Shown here in pieces: positions 18,685-34,149 of a DNA stretch of 64,000 nucleotides. This DNA comes from Podarcis tiliguerta. Its lineage: Eukaryota. Under the pieces are notes generated by a model. It worked only from the letters and a program-made list of their open reading frames with translations, did no database searches and had not been told where the DNA came from. The position numbers were made by a program, and so were the translations under genes. The stretch is taken from the NCBI GenBank assembly GCA_965153285.1, contig OZ229119.1; one strand, 5' to 3'. Position 1 is the first letter of the stretch. The number at the start of each line of letters is the position of its first letter.

Positions 18685-19176
18685 NNNNNNNNNNNNNNNN
18701 NNNNNNNNNNNNNNNNNNNNNNNNNNNNNNNNNNNNNNNNNNNNNNNNNNNNNNNNNNNNNNNNNNNNNNNNNNNNNNNNNNNNNNNNNNNNNNNNNNNN
18801 NNNNNNNNNNNNNNNNNNNNNNNNNNNNNNNNNNNNNNNNNNNNNNNNNNNNNNNNNNNNNNNNNNNNNNNNNNNNNNNNNNNNNNNNNNNNNNNNNNNN
18901 NNNNNNNNNNNNNNNNNNNNNNNNNNNNNNNNNNNNNNNNNNNNNNNNNNNNNNNNNNNNNNNNNNNNNNNNNNNNNNNNNNNNNNNNNNNNNNNNNNNN
19001 NNNNNNNNNNNNNNNNNNNNNNNNNNNNNNNNNNNNNNNNNNNNNNNNNNNNNNNNNNNNNNNNNNNNNNNNNNNNNNNNNNNNNNNNNNNNNNNNNNNN
19101 NNNNNNNNNNNNNNNNNNNNNNNNNNNNNNNNNNNNNNNNNNNNNNNNNNNNNNNNNNNNNNNNNNNNNNNNNNNN
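18685..19176. other. Assembly gap (492 N)
   Basis: Run of N. Confidence 1.
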
Positions 19177-21296: not shown

Positions 21297-22139
21297 TGTA
21301 GTGTTTCCAATGAAGTGCTAAAAAAATAAAATAGCTTGTAAGGAAAACATGGTGGGGCATGGGGAGAGAGGACAAGTAAAGGACGCGAGGTAAGGCATCC
21401 CCTTTTAATTGCTCCTTTGAACAAATACTGAGGGCTCTCCAGCAAGCACACATGCACCATTAAGCACACCATATATCACCGCTTTCAGGAGGGAGGGCGG
21501 AATATAAATGGGATAAATAATAAATAGATAAAGATCTCCACCCACACATGCACAAAGACAGATTAATCTTTGTCACTAACAATTGCTCGTCAAGCTACAG
21601 GAGAGGTCTCTTAGACCTGCATGGGCGTAGGGGAAATAGCACATTAAGCCTCACACTGCCAAATTAAGGACATCTATCAGGTTAACTTTTTTACATCTGT
21701 ATTTTTATGGCACGAAGAAGAGTTCAATAAAGGACTGAAGTATTTCACATTCCTGTAGTTTAAACCCTTTCCCAAACACTGTCGTGTTTTAATCTTTGTA
21801 CGAGTGCTGTAAAGGAAGCCAGTGTTTTTTATGGTCATATTAAAGGTCATCAACTGAGTTCATGTCAGAGGTGAAAGTAAAACCAGGAACTTCCTGTGTT
21901 TCTAGTTCGGCACGAGAGGAAGACTTGAGCAATCCTTGGGTGGTTCATGGGATTCTCCCATCCCAAGTGATGGGTGTTTATGGATTCAGTATGAGAATGT
22001 GGCCACAGCCTGTCTCTGCCCAACAGAGCAGTCATGATTTTTTCATGAATGGAGGCGTCTCCACTTGGCAACCCTGTATTCTCACAATATTTTGACCTTT
22101 TCAAACCCAACTGTCATTGAACGAAATGGTATATCAGGA

Positions 22140-22547
22140 TGTCAGGGAACTGCCATCGGAAGGACAGGAGGTGCAAGGGCTCTCTGAGGTGGAGAGAGAC
22201 GCAGCAGCGGAAGAGGGAACCAGTAGGGGGAGAGCAGGAACTTCAAGGGAAGGTGAGTCGGAGGAATGGCTCAGAGACGCTTCCAGCGAAAACAGCGGGG
22301 AGGTCTCAGGACCTCCTATAGGGACACCCATTCCTCGCCGGAAACTGTCACGCCGAGAGTCCAGAAGACGTGTTTCCGTTAAGGAGCTTTTATGTTGGAA
22401 ACGATTCCGAAAGCAACCACTTTCGGATTCTGCTAGCGATTGACGCAGCCATGCTGGAAGGGCTCCGTCACAGGCAGAGGTTTGAAAACTTGATCAAACT
22501 CTGAGGGACTTGCAGTTTACGCACAAGCAGCTCTTCATCCCATCACA
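22140..22547 (+). repeat. 5' LTR (408 bp)
   Basis: TGTCAGGG...CATCACA. Identical to 27230-27637 except A22486 versus G27576. Confidence 0.98.
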
Positions 22548-22560: not shown

Positions 22561-22594
22561 CACCGAAAGCTAGCTTGTGACAGGGAGAGGCATC

Positions 22595-23614
22595 ATGAGC
22601 GAACCAGCCGGAACCGGAGGAGCAGGAGCAGCTGGAGGAGGTCCAAGCCTGGAGGAAAGGTACAGAGCGTTGGAGATCCAGCTTGCCTTGCAAACGGCGA
22701 GGCTGGAGGAGAGGAGGGCTCAGGATGCAGAAAAGGGGAAGGAGAAAACCACCCCGCTCACCACAAAGATGCCAGGATTGGTGCAGAAATTCGGGGGGGA
22801 CCCCAGAAACTATCATGCCTTTAGAACAGAGATGCAGTACGCTCTCAACCTGCAGTTTGATGACTTCCCCGACGAGGAATCGCGAGTGGCTTTTGTAATT
22901 AGCCATCTCGAATCAGGGGCGAAGGACTGGGTTAGACCCCTGATGGCAGCGAATAATGAGATCCTAAAGGACACGATGAAGTTTTTTCGTGCCATGGACC
23001 TGATGTTTTCCAGCGACATTGAGCAGGGGGTGGTGCGAAGGCAGTTAATGGCTTGCAAACAGGGGAGCCGGTCTGTCCGTGAGTACTGGACTGAGTTTAC
23101 TATGTTGATTCATAGATTGGGGTGGGACCTATCGGCGGAACCCATTCAGATGCTTTTCGAAGAGGGGCTCTCTTCGTCCCTTAAAGATGAACTTTCCTGG
23201 GCCCCCAGGGCGGAGTCTATGGACCAGCTGACTAAATCCGCGCTGGCCATAGGAGCGCCCCAGGAAGCGAGGGCTTTGGAAAGGCGGGAAGGGAAAGGAG
23301 AACGTTGGAGGGAGCTCCGCATTCCAGACATTCCAGAGCCGCCTTTCCCGCCGGCAGAGCCGATGGAAGTTGGAACAGCGCGGGCGCGCGCAGTTTCAAA
23401 CCTCAGTGAAGGGCGGAAGAAGGAGGGAAAGAGCGCCAAGAAATGTTATCTCTGCCAACAGCCAGGACACTTTGCCAGAGTCTGTCCACAAAGAAAGGAA
23501 TGGCAAGGGATGGCAGGAGCTGTTGGGGGAGAAGAGGAGGAAAGCAAGGAGCAAGTAAAAGCCAACGCCTGGCTGCCACCGTCGGGGCACAGCAGCCAGG
23601 CCAAAAAGCAGTGA
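22595..23614 (+). CDS. gag: Gag (retrotransposon capsid plus CCHC zinc knuckle)
   Basis: ATG at 22595. Contains KFGGDPRNYHAF, LESGAKDW, KQGSRSVREY, PMEVG and CYLCQQPGHFARVC; sushi/PEG10-like. Confidence 0.95.
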   Translation: MSEPAGTGGAGAAGGGPSLEERYRALEIQLALQTARLEERRAQDAEKGKEKTTPLTTKMPGLVQKFGGDPRNYHAFRTEMQYALNLQFDDFPDEESRVAFVISHLESGAKDWVRPLMAANNEILKDTMKFFRAMDLMFSSDIEQGVVRRQLMACKQGSRSVREYWTEFTMLIHRLGWDLSAEPIQMLFEEGLSSSLKDELSWAPRAESMDQLTKSALAIGAPQEARALERREGKGERWRELRIPDIPEPPFPPAEPMEVGTARARAVSNLSEGRKKEGKSAKKCYLCQQPGHFARVCPQRKEWQGMAGAVGGEEEESKEQVKANAWLPPSGHSSQAKKQ

Positions 23615-25896
23615 AAGTGCCCACGCCAGAACCTCCCAGACCTGCTTTAGTGATAGAGGTGTTGCTAGAGCTGCCAAACGGACACCCACTACAGATCAAG
23701 GCGCTTTTGGATTCAGGCAGCTCCTGTAATTTCATGAGTAAGGAGTTTGCAGCTGAGCACCAGATACAGACCATCCCCTTAAGTAACCCCCTGCAGGTGA
23801 CCACGATTGACAGCAGAGAGCTGTTGGGAGGAGAAGTGAACCAACAGACAGTCCCTATGATAATGAGGGTGGCAAGGCACACCGAAAGGATAGCGTTTAA
23901 TGTGGCCACCTTGGGAGGAGCTCCCATCATTTTGGGGATGAGCTGGCTGGCACTACACGATCCTCTAGTGGGCTGGCATCAGAGGGTGGTCTCCTTTGGG
24001 TCAGCGCATTGCCTAGAACACTGCAAGCAGGGGAAGGTCCCAGGAGGAGCCAGACTCACCCTAGCCGGGATGGAGGTAATGAATAAAGGGAAGGTGCCTC
24101 CGCAATACGCAGATCTGAGCAACGTATTTAGCGAAAGGGAAGCGGACAAACTGCCGCCGCATAGACCCTTTGACTGTCAAATCAACCTACTCCCTGGGGC
24201 TCAACTCCCAGTGGGCAAGCTGTACGCCATGTCAGACAGGGAGATGCAGGAGTTGAGGGAGTTCATTGACAAAAACCTGAAGCGAGGTTTCATCAGAGAG
24301 TCCCGAGCGGTGGGGGGCAGTCCAGTGTTTTTTGTGGACAAAAAGAACACAGATAAGCCGAGACTTGTAGTGGACTTCAGGGCCCTAAATGCCGTGTCGG
24401 AACCCCTGGCTTTTCCTATGTCCCGAATTGATGACATTCTGACCAGAGTGAGGAAGGGGAAGATTTTTACAAAACTGGACCTGCGGGGGGCGTACAATCT
24501 GATACGCATAAGGAAGGGGGATGAATGGAAGACCACCATGTTCACCCCTTTGGGAGCATTTGAATACCTCGTCATGCCCTTCGGTCTCCAAGCAGGCTCA
24601 GCATGTTTTCAAAGTTTTATGAACCACGTCTTGGGACCTTTGCTCTACAAGAATTGTGTGGCCTTTTTAGATGACGTGTTGGTGTATTCGGAAGATGAAG
24701 AGCAGCATGTGAGGGACGTGCGAGAAGTGTTGGGCCGGCTACAAGCCAATCAGCTGTGGGTGAAACTGGAGAAGTGCCAGTTTCATACCAAGGAGGTGGA
24801 ATTCCTGGGGTACCGCTTGTCAGACAAAGGATTGGCCATGGATCCAGGCAAGGTCCAAGCGGTACTGGAATGGAAAACACCGAAGACCAAGAAGGATGTG
24901 CAAAGATTCCTGGGGTTTGGGAACTTTTATCGGAAGTTCATCAAGAACTTTGCACACTTGACGGCGCCCATCACCGACTGCCTCAGTAGCAAGAAGAAAT
25001 TTCTTTGGACGGCGGAGGCGGAGCGAGCATTTGAAGAACTGAAAAGGGCTTTCGCCTCGGAAGAACAACTTCTGCATGTGGACTTACGGAAACCCATGAG
25101 AGTGGAGACAGACGCGTCTGACCGGGCGGTAGGGGCGGTACTTCTTCAACCGGGAAGGAATACGTCGGAGTGGAGACCGTGCGCCTTCTTCTCGAGGAAG
25201 CTGAATAAGTCCGAGCGGAACTACACGGTGTATGACAGGGAGCTACTCGCCATTCACGAAGCGTTCCGGAGGTGGAGACATTTGTTAATTGGGGCACAAC
25301 ACAAGGTGCAAGTGTGCACCGACCACAAGAATTTGGAGTATTGGAGAACGGCTCGAGTACTCAACCAACGACAAGTGAGATGGGCACAGGAATTCTCCAA
25401 ATTCCACTTTGAAATTTGTTATGTGCCAGGCCCAGAAAACGTCAGGGCGGACGCTCTCTCACGCAAACCAGAGTATTTGGAGGGGGAGGGGGCAATCGAA
25501 GAAAGACATGTCATCCCTGAGGACCGCTGGGTGTGTGGGGCGGCGCTGGTGGGGCGACGAGAACTGGTAGAGGAAACGGAAAATGATGAGTATGCCCAGG
25601 ATAAGCTCAGAGGTCTCAGGGGAGAGGGTGAGAGTCCAGAAGGTTTTGAGGAAAGAAATGGGGCATTGTATTACAAAGGGGCACTGTATATACCAGGAGG
25701 TGAATTGAGGGGAAGAGTACTCAAGCAGTTGCACGATAGCCCCACAGCGGGACATTTTGGACAACACAAGACCATGTGGATGGTTACCAGGGAATTTTGG
25801 TGGCCCAAGGTGAGGGAAGATGTAAAGGAGTATGTAAGACGGTGTGACCAATGTCAGAGAGCCAAGGGGGAAAGAAGGGCGCGGCAGGGTTATTAG
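23443..25896 (+). CDS. pol: Pol part 1: aspartic protease, reverse transcriptase, RNase H, integrase HHCC (real translation probably enters near 23560 by frameshift)
   Basis: LLDSGS (protease); KLDLRGAY, MPFGL, FLDD (RT); TDASD, ELLAI, TDHKNL, ADALSR (RNase H); HDSPTAGH...CDQC (integrase Zn finger). Confidence 0.95.
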   Translation: MLSLPTARTLCQSLSTKKGMARDGRSCWGRRGGKQGASKSQRLAATVGAQQPGQKAVKVPTPEPPRPALVIEVLLELPNGHPLQIKALLDSGSSCNFMSKEFAAEHQIQTIPLSNPLQVTTIDSRELLGGEVNQQTVPMIMRVARHTERIAFNVATLGGAPIILGMSWLALHDPLVGWHQRVVSFGSAHCLEHCKQGKVPGGARLTLAGMEVMNKGKVPPQYADLSNVFSEREADKLPPHRPFDCQINLLPGAQLPVGKLYAMSDREMQELREFIDKNLKRGFIRESRAVGGSPVFFVDKKNTDKPRLVVDFRALNAVSEPLAFPMSRIDDILTRVRKGKIFTKLDLRGAYNLIRIRKGDEWKTTMFTPLGAFEYLVMPFGLQAGSACFQSFMNHVLGPLLYKNCVAFLDDVLVYSEDEEQHVRDVREVLGRLQANQLWVKLEKCQFHTKEVEFLGYRLSDKGLAMDPGKVQAVLEWKTPKTKKDVQRFLGFGNFYRKFIKNFAHLTAPITDCLSSKKKFLWTAEAERAFEELKRAFASEEQLLHVDLRKPMRVETDASDRAVGAVLLQPGRNTSEWRPCAFFSRKLNKSERNYTVYDRELLAIHEAFRRWRHLLIGAQHKVQVCTDHKNLEYWRTARVLNQRQVRWAQEFSKFHFEICYVPGPENVRADALSRKPEYLEGEGAIEERHVIPEDRWVCGAALVGRRELVEETENDEYAQDKLRGLRGEGESPEGFEERNGALYYKGALYIPGGELRGRVLKQLHDSPTAGHFGQHKTMWMVTREFWWPKVREDVKEYVRRCDQCQRAKGERRARQGY
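23554..23622 (+). promoter_or_regulatory. Putative -1 ribosomal frameshift signal (slip site plus H-type pseudoknot)
   Basis: pol is in the -1 frame relative to gag. Stem 1 is GCCTGGCTGC (23567-23576) / GCAGCCAGGC (23592-23601); loop GGGCAC (23585-23590) pairs with GTGCCC (23617-23622). Confidence 0.8.
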
Positions 25897-27533
25897 AACC
25901 ATTACCCACACCAGAACGGCCTTGGGAAGCGGTATCAATAGATTTTATGACGGATCTGCCAAAATCCAAGGGGAAAACAGCCATCATGGTAGTAGTAGAC
26001 CTGTTAACCAAGATGTGCCACTTTGTAGCATGCTCACATGCAGTCACAGCGGAAGAAACAGCTAAGTTGTTTGTAGAACACATCTTTAGGCTGCACGGCG
26101 CCCCCTTGAGGGTGATCTCAGACCGCGGCAAACAATTTACTTCCAGGTTCTGGAGGAAGCTCATGAGCTTACTGCACGTGGAAGTCAATTTTTCGACTGC
26201 CCGGCACCCTGAAACCAACGGGCAGGCGGAAAGAGCAAATGGCATCCTCCAACAATATCTGAGGTGTTATGTCAATGACAGAGAGAACGATTGGGTCGAA
26301 AAGTTGGCGCTGGCAGAATTTGCCTACAACAATGCGGAGAATGTGTCCACAGGGATGAGCCCCTTTTTGGCTAATTATGGGTGTCACCCCAGGGCTTTTC
26401 CAGGGGAGGGAGGCGAGAGATGGAGCGTCCCAGCGGCCGAACATTTTGTAGAGGAGATGGAAGCGATCCATCGTCAGCTCCAGCTCAACTTAGAAAGGGC
26501 CAAGGCTCAATATAAGAAGCAGGCAGACAAGAACAGAAGGGAAGGTGAAACCATAAGGGTGGGGGATCAGGTGTGGCTGTCAACCCAAGGGTTGCCGTTC
26601 AAAGGGGGTTGTAAAAAATTAAGACCCAAGAGATTGGGACCCTTTGAGGTCATTCAGCAGGTCAACCCAGTGGCTTTCAAACTCCGGTTACCCAGCCACA
26701 TGAAATTGCACCCAGTGTTCCACAGGTCGTTACTGTCACCGTACAGGGGGGGACGTGAAGGGGAGCACACCAGGGGACCACCCTTGGAAGAAAGGGAAAG
26801 AAGCAACCATGTAGCGGAAATCCTCGATTCTAGGTGGAAGGGAAATCAGGTGGAGTATTTGGTGGCGTGGGAAGGGGAACCGGAGTCAGAAAACACCTGG
26901 GTGACTGCAGGGGAGGTCAATGACGAGGTTTTAACAGAAACGTTCCACCAAAGATTCCCGAGGAAACCACAGCCGGTAGCAAGGTTTAGGAGGGAGTATT
27001 TCGGCACCACCGACGAGGAAGAGGAACTGGAAGGATTCGCGGAGTCGGAGTTGGAAGAGGGAATGGACTCCGATGACGAGGAGTATCGAGAGACCAGGAA
27101 CAGCAACAAGTGGAGGAAGGTGTTCGAAACCTCGGACGATGAGGAAGGTTCTTTCAGGGGTTTTACCTCCTCACAACCCGTAGGGAAGGAGACGGGAGGG
27201 GGTGAAGGGGGCCCTGGAGGGGAGGTGGATGTCAGGGAACTGCCATCGGAAGGACAGGAGGTGCAAGGGCTCTCTGAGGTGGAGAGAGACGCAGCAGCGG
27301 AAGAGGGAACCAGTAGGGGGAGAGCAGGAACTTCAAGGGAAGGTGAGTCGGAGGAATGGCTCAGAGACGCTTCCAGCGAAAACAGCGGGGAGGTCTCAGG
27401 ACCTCCTATAGGGACACCCATTCCTCGCCGGAAACTGTCACGCCGAGAGTCCAGAAGACGTGTTTCCGTTAAGGAGCTTTTATGTTGGAAACGATTCCGA
27501 AAGCAACCACTTTCGGATTCTGCTAGCGATTGA
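25851..27533 (+). CDS. pol: Pol part 2: integrase DDE core, GPY/F, chromodomain, acidic FxGF-motif tail and basic tail; separated from part 1 by a 1-nt deletion near 25882
   Basis: SIDF, ISDRG, PETNGQAERAN, GPFEVI, VAEILDSR...YLVAWEG...NTW. The stop codon lies inside the 3' LTR. Confidence 0.93.
   Translation: MSESQGGKKGAAGLLEPLPTPERPWEAVSIDFMTDLPKSKGKTAIMVVVDLLTKMCHFVACSHAVTAEETAKLFVEHIFRLHGAPLRVISDRGKQFTSRFWRKLMSLLHVEVNFSTARHPETNGQAERANGILQQYLRCYVNDRENDWVEKLALAEFAYNNAENVSTGMSPFLANYGCHPRAFPGEGGERWSVPAAEHFVEEMEAIHRQLQLNLERAKAQYKKQADKNRREGETIRVGDQVWLSTQGLPFKGGCKKLRPKRLGPFEVIQQVNPVAFKLRLPSHMKLHPVFHRSLLSPYRGGREGEHTRGPPLEERERSNHVAEILDSRWKGNQVEYLVAWEGEPESENTWVTAGEVNDEVLTETFHQRFPRKPQPVARFRREYFGTTDEEEELEGFAESELEEGMDSDDEEYRETRNSNKWRKVFETSDDEEGSFRGFTSSQPVGKETGGGEGGPGGEVDVRELPSEGQEVQGLSEVERDAAAEEGTSRGRAGTSREGESEEWLRDASSENSGEVSGPPIGTPIPRRKLSRRESRRRVSVKELLCWKRFRKQPLSDSASD
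27216..27229 (+). promoter_or_regulatory. Polypurine tract
   Basis: Purine-rich GGAGGGGAGGTGGA immediately before the 3' LTR. Confidence 0.85.
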
Positions 27534-27637
27534 CGCAGCCATGCTGGAAGGGCTCCGTCACAGGCAGAGGTTTGAGAACTTGATCAAACTCTGAGGGACT
27601 TGCAGTTTACGCACAAGCAGCTCTTCATCCCATCACA
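27230..27637 (+). repeat. 3' LTR (408 bp)
   Basis: Direct repeat of 22140-22547. Confidence 0.98.
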
Positions 27638-28959
27638 CAGGAGCTCTGCTCTTCCTTGGATATGCTTGTCCTCCATTCAGGATAGTGATGTCTTCTGCAT
27701 CCTTGCTATCTACCTTGGCTTCATGATCTGGCCTACTGTTTTCCTGTTTTTGCAAAGCTTTGACAGTCCGAGGAGCCAGATGTATGCCAATAAGTGGAAT
27801 ATGCCAGGTCACATTTTAGGGCTATGCACTCCTTAAATATCACCTGCTCTGCTAAATGAATGGGAAGCCTTTGTGAAGCATTATGTGTCACGTCCTCTTA
27901 AAACAGCTCTTCTTAATACCATGGTGATTAAATTTCTCTATATCTATTTAGGCAGTGAATGTGTGTGACTTGAATTATAATGTATTAATGATGCTGGACT
28001 TCCCCCACAGCATGCTGTGAACTCCCACTGGGACTTCTTGGCTTTTAGTGTGTGTGGTAGATATTTTGAGTTTTAAGTAAGTGCTATAAATAAATGCAGC
28101 AATTACTGTGTAGGGCAATGAAAAAGATAACTGGTTAAGTTTAGCTTTGTGGAGCTATCGTTGTTATATTATTGCTGCTAAGCAGTTAGGCTCAGAGAAC
28201 CTTTGTAATCTTTGTTAATCATCCTGTGGAGAAATTCTGTTTTCCTCTTTTTCTCCCTTCACCCCAATATAGTGACTATATACATAACTTTTGAAATAAC
28301 TAGATAGCATAAGGGTTAGAATTCAATGTAAAATGAGATCCTGGGAATAATGACACTGCTTGCATTAATCCCCATATCATCAGGAAATGAAAAGGAAAAA
28401 GAAATAACATTTGGATACACATCCCTCTACCATTTTTTAGCCAAAAACATTTTGTTTGGTTCCATTTATGAATTGCTTCCCATAAAAATATCTCAGAGCA
28501 AATCCACAGTAAAAACAACAGATTTCTTTGTCTTCTTTTGTGGGGTGGGGAAAAGGAATTCATATAATTTCCAATTTAATCCAATGCAAATCTGGGAGAG
28601 CTCACCCAGGGCTACTATTGATAGCCATGCCCCTATGAATTTCTCTAGTTCCCTTTTGTCTTTTAAAATGAATTCTAAGGTACTTAGAGAGACACCCATG
28701 ACTCTTCATCAGCCTGACTCACCTTTGTCTCTTGGCTTCCCTCATCCCACTCACTTGCTTCAGCTTCTGCCTCTGATTCTGCACTTCTCTCTGCCATTGA
28801 CTCTCCCAGCTCACTAAGCCCTGTCACTAAGCTCTTCAGCTTCCAATATCTCCTCCTCCCAGTCTCCACCCCCTGACCACTTCTTCCTTTGGGGGTTTCC
28901 CTTCTGGTTCCTTTGCATCCAACCAGTCCATGGCAGGCAGAAAGCACTGCACAATATTG

Positions 28960-31416: not shown

Positions 31417-32950
31417 CACAACTGCTGAGTCTTGTGCTGTCTAGGCCCAGGACAAGTGGAAGTGAGATGAAAGAAGGAAAGATAGAGAATCCTGTTCAGA
31501 ATATAACCTATATATTGATTTAACAAAATTTATATACCACTTGATTGAAATAAAACCTCCAAGTGGTTTACAAAAAAAAATAAAAAATTAAAACATTGAA
31601 ATTATCAATAAAGGCAGCTAGAAACAAGTATTTTAAAACATTCAAAAATAAATAATACCAACAGTAAGCTGAAAACAAAAACTTCTACATGTGTATATTT
31701 GCCACCAACTTAACTGCACACCCATTTCCCCCAGGTTTTCAGAGTAAAATGTGTAAATAAATGTGCATATATTTACTTTGCATATATTGCTGCCCGTATA
31801 TTATTTATGATTTCAGGTATTCAAAGAATTGGTATTATGGGAAAAGACTGCCAGAAACAAAAGGAGGATGGGAGTTAAAGGGTTGGGAGTGGGGACTTTT
31901 GATTGCTATGAAGGCAGGGACAGGGCACTGCACAGGGCACTGAGGTTTTTATGCTTTTAATAGATGCATGTGAATCCGAAATAAATTGAGTAAAAAGAGC
32001 CTAGAAAGCCTTGCAAATGGCATTTGTAAAAGAATAGCTTATGTTGGAAGTGGTTTCCTTTTGCATGCCTCACATAATCTGGAACAATGTTATTAATTAT
32101 CTTGGCTAACTTCCTTCGTTGTATCTCAATGTGGTTTAGCTAATTTCCCCTCCTAGTCTTTCAATTTGGTCATTCATGCATCATAAACCGTACCATACAT
32201 TCAGATTGGGGCTGTTGCATACTGTCTAGCTTAATTTCCCTTTCATAAGTATACTCTCTTTAAGTGCCAAGATCTGTACTCAACTAGCTGACTAATTAAG
32301 TGTTTTGTCTCTCATAGTGAATCGTATTCATTCATAGGTCATTGGAAAGATATTGGCTTCCTGCAATATTCCTTCCAAGTTTTGATTTATATGAAAAACC
32401 AAACCAAAAAACCCTGGCAATGAAAAAAAAAAGTAGGAATATTTGGCACCATACGTACTCTGTAATTAGATATTCGACAGTGGCAACCTTGGAGAGCATG
32501 GTAGCTAACAAAAATACAGAGAAGAAGTGTCATGATGCTGGCTCACAATGAGCTGGCTCACAATTCGAACACAGAGCTGCATTCTACTGAAAAGTCCCTG
32601 TCACCAATCTGTATGATACCATCCATTGGACCTGGTCCGTGGGGACAAATGGGGCACTGCCCCACCACCCTGTCTCCCCTCAGTCACCCCCCACTTGCCT
32701 TCTTGCTTACAACCAGATCTGCCTGCCATCAGCACTGGGCCTCTTGCCTCCTGCTCCACCCAATTGGATACCAGCAGGAGGAGTGTAAAAATGGTTTGAG
32801 GGTTGGGCAATGAGATAACCTTGGTGGAATTGGACCCCGTAAATAGGTTTAGGAAAGCTTTTTGGCCCCGAGAACCACATGCAGACGTTTTTGGGGGGAG
32901 GGGGTGCCTGTATGATGGTAGGTGTGGCCAGAAGCAGCTAGTCCCATGTG

Positions 32951-33936
32951 CTTCATAAAACTTAGGGAAGTGCTGGGTGAGATCCCATGGACAGTAATAC
33001 TAAAAGGAAAGGGAGTTCATGATGGCTGGGAGTTTGTTAAGAGGGAGATAGTAAAAACACAACTTCAGGCAATACCAATGAGACGGAAACATGGAAGGTG
33101 CCTAAAGAAGCCAGGGTGGCTATCTAAAGAACTTTTAACTGAGTTAAGATTAAAAAAGGATGTGTACAAAAAATGGAAAAGGGGGGAAACCACCAAAGAG
33201 GAATTCAAACAAATAGCCAGCACGTGTAAACACAAAGTCAGAAAAGCTAAAGCACAGAATGAACTCAGGCTTGCTAGAGAGGTTAAAAGCAACAAAAAAG
33301 GCTTTTATGGGTATGTCCGTAGCAAAAGGAAGAACAAAGAAACAGTGGGGTCTCTCAGAGGAGAAGATGGTGAAATGCAAACAGGGGACACAGAAAGGGC
33401 TGAACTCCTCAATGCCTTCTTTGCCTCAGTCTTCTCCGATAGAGAAAACAATGCCCGACCTGAAGAATTTGGAGCAAATGATTCAGCAGAGGAAACACAG
33501 CCCAGAATAACTAAGGAGATAGTACAAGAATACTTGGCTAGTTTAGATGTATTCAAGTCTCCAGAGCCAGATGAACTGCATCCAAGAGTATTAAAAGAAC
33601 TGGCAGATGTGATCTCAGAACCACTGGCAGTCATCTTTGAGAATTCCTGGAGAACAGGCGAAGTCCCGGCAGACTGGAGGAGGGCAAATGTTGTCCCTAT
33701 TTTCAAAAAGGGGAAAAGAGAGGACCCAAATAATTACCGCCCAGTCAGTCTGACATCAATACCAGGGAAGATTCTGGAGCAGATCATCAAGCAAACAATC
33801 TGTGAGCACCTAGAAAGGAATGCTGTGATCACCAATAGTCAGCATGGATTTCTGAAAAATAAGTCATGTCAGACTAACCTGATCTCGTTTTTTGACAGAA
33901 TTACAAGCCTGGTAGATGAAGGGAACGCAGTGGATG
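32951..33936 (+). mobile_element. CR1 LINE ORF2 internal fragment (linker plus start of RT), open for about 330 codons
   Basis: AELLNAFFASVF, KSPEPDELHPRVLKELADVI, DWRRANVVPIFKKG, NYRPVSLTSIPGKILEQII, SQHGF, SCQTNLISFFD. Confidence 0.95.
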
Positions 33937-34149
33937 ATCTTTACTACTTAGAACAAAGCAGTGTACAATCCATAAAATGCATTGAAACAGCTGAACAATA
34001 AAAACAGACTAAAATGAGTCCTGGACATTAGCTCCCCTATCCAACATCCCAGTTTAAACTCCAATTGCCATTCTTGTTCCACGCTCCATACTAGGCGATT
34101 TCTCTCTCTCGATCTACAGGGCAGCTGGGAGAAATATCCCAATAAATGC

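Follow-up and report, generated by a model that had tools for sequence, protein, structure and literature searches.

How a mobile element chooses its target site governs both the harm that it does and how long it survives, and the tethering mechanisms described so far are, to our knowledge, few, namely HIV-LEDGF, MLV-BET, Ty1-Pol III, Ty3-TFIIIB, Ty5-Sir4 and chromodomain-H3K9me. A locus in the lizard Podarcis tiliguerta raises the question of whether a Ty3/Gypsy retrotransposon might be tethered to chromatin through short motifs in the tail of its integrase that imitate the motifs by which host proteins bind the chromatin readers LEDGF and HRP2. The stretch of DNA analysed here, hereafter called the window, comprises 64,000 nucleotides of contig OZ229119.1 (NCBI GenBank assembly GCA_965153285.1). 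An earlier note on this DNA, written from its letters and open reading frames, had described two tandem motifs of this kind behind the chromodomain and had proposed that they connect the intasome with LEDGF, HRP2 or related factors.

The element and its insertion

The element is a Ty3/Gypsy chromovirus, having LTRs and a TSD, a gag gene, the series PR-RT-RNaseH-IN and a chromodomain after the integrase, and in the integrase tree it stands among vertebrate chromoviruses. Its parts are as follows.

22135-22139, + strand: 5′ copy of the TSD, CAGGA, 5 bp (identical pentamer after the 3′ LTR at 27638-27642)
22140-22547, + strand: 5′ LTR (TG...CA), 408 bp (one mismatch in the local alignment with 27230-27637)
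22577-23614, + strand: gag ORF (Pfam: Retrotrans_gag, Ty3_capsid, zf-CCHC)
23443-25896, + strand: pol ORF, part 1, with protease, reverse transcriptase, RNase H and integrase zinc finger (Pfam: RVP_2, RVT_1, RT_RNaseH, Integrase_H2C2)
25851-27533, + strand: pol ORF, part 2, with integrase core, SH3, chromodomain and disordered tail (Pfam, in residues: rve 22-120, SH3_Tf2-1 238-299, Chromo 321-368)
27182-27229, + strand: purine-rich stretch including the polypurine tract and abutting the 3′ LTR (from the sequence)
27230-27637, + strand: 3′ LTR, 408 bp, starting with TG and ending with CA, the first ~300 bases of which lie within the pol ORF (LTR alignment)
27638-27642, + strand: 3′ copy of the TSD, CAGGA (repeat of 22135-22139)

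The single position at which the local alignment of the two LTRs differs is 22486 versus 27576, and a TSD flanks the element, which is therefore a recent insertion. It is present in one copy within the 64-kb window. The second part of the pol ORF crosses the polypurine tract and ends inside U3 of the 3′ LTR. Near 25,880, within the integrase, the pol frame of the window copy shifts; members of the family read through at this place without interruption, and so either the window copy is broken there or the assembly has slipped. Among the window ORFs of at least 130 aa, no host gene could be recognised near the insertion, the sole match being a reverse-transcriptase fragment, and this single insertion site is therefore uninformative on target bias. 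Many full-length Pol ORFs are found in Podarcis muralis, and in wall lizards these families appear to be young and abundant.

A chromodomain of type II

The chromodomain that precedes the tail is the following feature.

26811-26954 (ORF residues 321-368), + strand: type II chromodomain (Pfam Chromo, E = 3.6e-08)

Of the three residues of the aromatic cage, the first and in most cases also the last are missing from chromodomains of type II (PMC3059260). In the lizard element only the middle cage residue, W, is kept and the first and last are absent, as read by eye from the translation in comparison with HP1, and with one of the three residues left the domain is therefore of type II. Because such a chromodomain is cage-less, the tail behind it may be the main targeting device of the element.

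Two motifs in the integrase tail

Between the chromodomain and the polypurine tract, two motifs and an acidic patch are found.

26982-27038, + strand: motif 1, RFRREYFGTTDEEEELEGF, with the aromatic segment F..YF, the 8-residue linker GTTDEEEE and LEGF (translation)
27063-27086, + strand: acidic-Ser-aromatic patch MDSDDEEY in the spacer (translation)
27108-27164, + strand: motif 2, KWRKVFETSDDEEGSFRGF, with the aromatic segment W..VF, the 9-residue linker ETSDDEEGS and the canonical FRGF (translation)

Translation of 25851-27533 (+) confirms the peptides given in the earlier note at the places given for them. The note had announced two tandem FxGF motifs in its title; the layout of both motifs stands, but the title does not, since motif 1 has LEGF (the text of the note had LxGF) and a true FxGF occurs in the window copy in motif 2 only.

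The TND-interacting motifs (TIMs) of host proteins contain an obligate short helix with F, V, L or I anchors, a flexible acidic linker of 8-16 residues in which D/E, G and phosphorylatable S/T are frequent, and an FxGF, optional in general, which fills a second, shallow pocket (PMC9987994). Both lizard motifs match this published TIM/IBM layout with an aromatic anchor segment as a candidate helix, an acidic linker and [F/L]xGF, and the likeness extends to the CK2 sites to which the note had drawn attention: the linkers of motif 1 and motif 2, with 8 and 9 residues, respectively, each contain 5 acidic residues and 2 CK2-type S/T-x-x-D/E sites. An anchor pattern [FWL]-x3-4-F, often with V, I or L preceding the F, is present in all motif instances found, and the phi-R-x-V-F with which motif 2 starts appears to resemble the MLL1 anchor.

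In an AlphaFold2 model built with a 13-row alignment, pLDDT is 84-94 over most of SH3 and chromodomain (~84-90 over most of the chromodomain), and is below 50 from approximately residue 147 of the model on, both motifs included, with no secondary structure. Both motifs are thus predicted to lie in an intrinsically disordered tail, and such a profile is typical of linear motifs in tails of this kind. The model has no helix in the free tail, but the helices of TIMs are expected to form upon binding, on which the model is uninformative. When the 77-residue tail and each 27-residue motif were compared by phmmer with PDB sequences, chance matches only (MHC class I, globins, oxidase) and no IBM-bearing chain were returned, short acidic peptides of this kind being below the sensitivity of phmmer.

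The motifs might be a chance resemblance, the tail being an acidic, low-complexity extension that contains FxGF-like strings and has no specific function. Acidic tails are common, and the window copy is frameshifted; in a looser scan, FLGF strings in an acidic context, which there are due to chance, were also detected in the reverse-transcriptase domains of related elements, and the tetrapeptide alone is therefore not diagnostic. However, when the 76-residue tail was shuffled 200,000 times with its composition preserved, at least two [FL]xGF strings appeared in only 0.06% of the shuffles, and two complete motifs, with aromatic segment, acidic linker and [FL]xGF, in 0.001% (~1 in 100,000). Both figures are indicative only, because the patterns behind these statistics were shaped post hoc, after the motif had been seen. 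A further test of chance resemblance is provided by the relatives of the element.

Conservation in the family and in lacertid lineages

Relatives were collected by three protein searches, an exhaustive representative search and two cluster look-ups, and those with a name are nearly all from P. muralis, P. lilfordi and Anolis carolinensis. They stem from few lizard genomes (Podarcis, Anolis and Logan/ENA contigs), copies from the same genome are not independent, and all conservation figures refer to a comparison at the protein level only. The window family has 10 other members with the same tail, including full-length Pols of 1,266-1,363 residues. Within this family, the only differences in motif 1 are at a single position of the linker and between the L and M of LEGF and MEGF, and in motif 2 of the 10 other members W, V-F, T-S and S-F-R-G-F are constant and six other positions vary.

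Five lacertid lineages were compared, whose integrase-core identity to the window copy is 81-87% as far as it was measured. Over the ten anchor columns, which comprise two aromatic anchors and F, G and F for each motif, pairwise identity averages 0.92, compared with 0.335 for the other 80 tail columns, 0.29 for the 28-column spacer and 0.72 for the folded chromodomain, and in 200,000 random draws no set of ten tail columns was as conserved. The W, F and F-G-F of motif 2 are invariant across these lineages, and conservation within the tail is highest at F-G-F. At the position of motif 1, sister lineages have FVGF, FEGF, FKGF, FIGF or FQGF. Depending on the lineage, the x of FxGF is E, V, R, L, K, I or Q, and the spacer carries indels; in the sister lineages it also contains a comparable acidic/S/aromatic patch that ends in W-E. 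The earlier note had suggested comparing the conservation of FxGF and of the helix aromatics with a divergent background, and in several lizard Gypsy lineages these anchors are indeed kept amid a divergent, indel-rich tail.

Conservation shows selection and does not name the partner. The motifs may have been selected for another partner or another step, such as the binding of histones (H2A-H2B) through acidic-aromatic stretches, transport into the nucleus or trafficking, an interaction with Gag or the particle, or processing by the protease after FxGF, which would remove the LTR-encoded extension. Histone binding would be consistent with the acidic-Ser-aromatic patch that the spacer retains, and cleavage with the F that is followed directly by P after the motif in several lineages, as in retropepsin F/P sites, but the residue after FxGF is variable (A, T, S, P, V or C), and neither a cleavage site nor a generic histone-binding stretch needs an upstream aromatic anchor at a fixed 8-9 residues together with an invariant Gly. 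An anchor, a fixed spacing and this Gly form a specific signature of LEDGF/HRP2-type TIMs (PMC9987994), and selection for some other partner or step appears unlikely to us.

Deeper lineages and distribution

In more distant lineages, one motif is kept. It occupies the second position in P0003 (70% core identity) and the first position in P0223/P0283, which come from two Podarcis species (56% overall identity for P0223), as well as in P0156/P0163 (55% core identity), where the linker is S/T-rich and non-acidic. The Anolis cluster P0222/P0279-281 (49% core identity) has no chromodomain after SH3, yet it carries the anchor, an 8-residue acidic linker and FEGF, and the Anolis group P0165/166/168 has no more than an acidic stretch followed by NLGF. 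The linker has 8 or 9 residues in every instance found with the pattern (14 proteins); outside P0156/P0163 it contains 3-7 acidic residues and, in all of these proteins but P0003, a CK2-type S/T-x-x-D/E site. A fixed ruler of 8-9 residues would be expected if the motif has to span two pockets of a single partner.

Chance resemblance fits these observations poorly, since the spacing stays the same even where integrase identity has dropped to 49% and since the anchor columns surpass the folded chromodomain in conservation, whereas the spacer decays. The shuffles, together with the constancy of anchors and spacing, led us to reject a low-complexity acidic tail that acquired its motifs by chance, and we consider it very improbable.

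A quick maximum-likelihood tree built from integrase cores unites every motif-bearing row in one squamate clade (SH-aLRT 93), and in the lacertid subclade (SH-aLRT 98) the motif is present in each row with an available tail, the unlabelled rows stopping before the tail. No motif was detected in approximately 70 chromovirus tails from fish, amphibians and fungi, where tails are short (median of 15 residues, 83 measured) and mostly basic. When ~200,000 residues of related Pol were scanned with the pattern, matches were confined to these squamate tails, and a query consisting of chromodomain and tail found no relative among metagenome contigs. It is quite possible, if slightly less likely than not, that a squamate clade of Ty3/Gypsy elements evolved or captured host-like LEDGF/HRP2 IBD-binding motifs in the integrase tail and thereby switched its targeting from chromodomain reading to H3K36me3 gene bodies.

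Proposed mechanism

The reading that we favour, with a probability of roughly 0.55, is that the tail motifs are selected short linear motifs which copy the host TIM of the LEDGF/HRP2 type and would tether the intasome. The anchor segment would fold as a short helix and occupy the first of the two pockets, a hydrophobic one, in the IBD/TND of LEDGF (PSIP1) and/or HRP2 (HDGFL2), and the acidic linker, probably phosphorylated at its CK2-type sites, would lie along a basic patch and aid binding. For the MLL1 motif, stronger binding after CK2 phosphorylation has been reported (PMC7220354). The second pocket would be filled by FxGF, and avidity may be gained because each integrase of the multimeric intasome carries two motifs. 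The readers LEDGF and HRP2 bind H3K36-methylated nucleosomes through their PWWP domain, because of which the intasome is proposed to be brought by this domain to H3K36-methylated, transcribed gene bodies.

The short helix and the acidic linker are common to all TIMs, and selectivity hinges on fine details (PMC9987994), which leaves room for a tether to elongating RNA polymerase II instead of the H3K36me3 readers, with the motifs acting as TIMs for another elongation TND (IWS1, TFIIS, Elongin A, MED26 or PPP1R10). That motif 1 of the window family is without the first Phe of FxGF would agree with such a partner. However, FxGF is optional for other TNDs, whereas it is present in, and essential for, all known partners of LEDGF and HRP2 (PMC9987994), and it is F-G-F that is most conserved in the tail. 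We therefore regard another elongation TND as a rather improbable partner and return to LEDGF/HRP2-type binding as the preferred reading. A precedent for such binding is the contact between FxGF and the LEDGF domain, which is conserved from flies to humans, the fly pair being JIL-1/JASPer and the JIL-1 motif DFxGFDE (PMC6877644).

Novelty and meaning

A full-text search of a literature collection made up largely of papers available without subscription turned up no account of motifs of this kind in the integrase of a retrotransposon. Tethering through a chromatin reader and the class of motif were already known; what appears to be new is their combination, i.e., a putative host-like LEDGF/HRP2 motif in the tail of a Ty3/Gypsy integrase that is kept across a squamate clade. 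If the proposal is true, it would be the first LEDGF/HRP2 tether in a non-lentiviral retroelement, achieved by linear-motif mimicry rather than by a surface of the catalytic core, and a vertebrate LTR retrotransposon would have taken an independent, convergent path to the lentiviral strategy. It would also provide a natural case of motif mimicry by a genomic parasite and would account for what cage-less type II chromoviruses use for targeting. The apparently young and abundant families of wall lizards make the tethering idea directly testable.

Comparison with known systems

The closest counterparts in layout are the cellular IBD-binding motifs of KMT2A/MLL1, JPO2, POGZ, IWS1, ASK and MED1 and of fly JIL-1, which are likewise disordered and combine a hydrophobic or aromatic anchor, an acidic, S/T-rich linker of the CK2 type and FxGF. 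Unlike these, the lizard pair lies in a retrotransposon integrase and consists of two tandem copies; its linkers, of 8-9 residues, are among the shortest that the range allows, and in motif 1 the first Phe is replaced by L or M.

Chromoviruses with a type I chromodomain, such as MAGGY, are also Ty3/Gypsy elements with a chromodomain after the integrase, and they share with our proposal the idea of a C-terminal targeting module. Type I chromodomains have three aromatic cage residues and read H3K9me, whereas the lizard element has a chromodomain of type II and, in addition, a motif-bearing tail that is absent from non-squamate relatives.

In HIV-1, the binding of integrase to LEDGF/p75 ties the intasome to the IBD of an H3K36me3 reader and leads to integration into transcribed genes (PMC9987994). 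The outcome proposed for the lizard element is the same. HIV integrase contacts LEDGF through the folded dimer interface of its catalytic core and not through a linear motif, whereas the lizard element would use a host-like, disordered motif in its C-terminal tail.

In this last respect it resembles two other systems, the C-terminal tail of MLV integrase with the ET domain of BET proteins and the targeting domain of Ty5 with Sir4, in each of which the choice of target is set by a short peptide, within or close to the C-terminus of the integrase, that binds a chromatin protein; the targeting motif of Ty5 is, moreover, regulated by phosphorylation. Both the class of motif and the proposed host partner differ in the lizard element, for which transcribed gene bodies are the suggested destination, whereas the MLV and Ty5 systems target promoters/enhancers or heterochromatin.

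Pol reading frame and its LTR-encoded extension

Two features of the element's pol gene lie outside the paired motifs of the integrase tail:
25851-25896, near 25,880, + strand: pol frame change, after the zinc finger of integrase and ahead of its catalytic core
27230-27533, + strand: extension of the pol ORF into U3 of the 3′ LTR, approximately 100 codons

The frame is uninterrupted at the position of the shift in other members of the family (for example, P0269 and P0002, related Pol proteins retrieved in the searches), and the frame change in the window copy reflects either an indel that disabled this very young insertion or an error of the assembly. At the protein level, the LTR-encoded extension appears to be conserved, because its basic end, which carries an LLCWKR motif, is common to the window element and to P0001, P0265, and P0003.

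Other retroelement sequences and host gene models

Elsewhere in the window, an ORF of 359 aa (32922-34001, + strand) has a weak match to RVT_1 (E = 1.1e-05, under the gathering score) and is probably a fragment of another, non-LTR retroelement. A run of N at 18685-19176 represents an assembly gap or a masked stretch.

Integrase fragments of the element's clade were also found fused into several annotated host gene models, including the following:
P0004: Podarcis muralis, XP_077774286.1
P0044: Rhineura
P0234: Crotalus

The host annotations among such models include vomeronasal receptor, TM9SF2, and mannose-6-phosphate receptor, and these fusions are likely to be annotation chimeras or intronic insertions.

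Acidic-aromatic sequences of the integrase tail

The spacer between the two TND-interacting-like motifs contains an additional patch:
27063-27086: acidic-Ser-aromatic patch, MDSDDEEY in the window copy

Its counterpart in P0001, P0002, and P0157 is of the EEESDWE type, in which the acidic-Ser-aromatic character is kept, and the patch may serve as a third, helix-less contact or constitute a separate acidic-aromatic motif. In a related Gypsy lineage of Anolis carolinensis (P0222, P0279, P0280, and P0281), the chromodomain is absent after the SH3 domain, and the long acidic tail contains one textbook motif composed of an anchor, an acidic linker, and FEGF.
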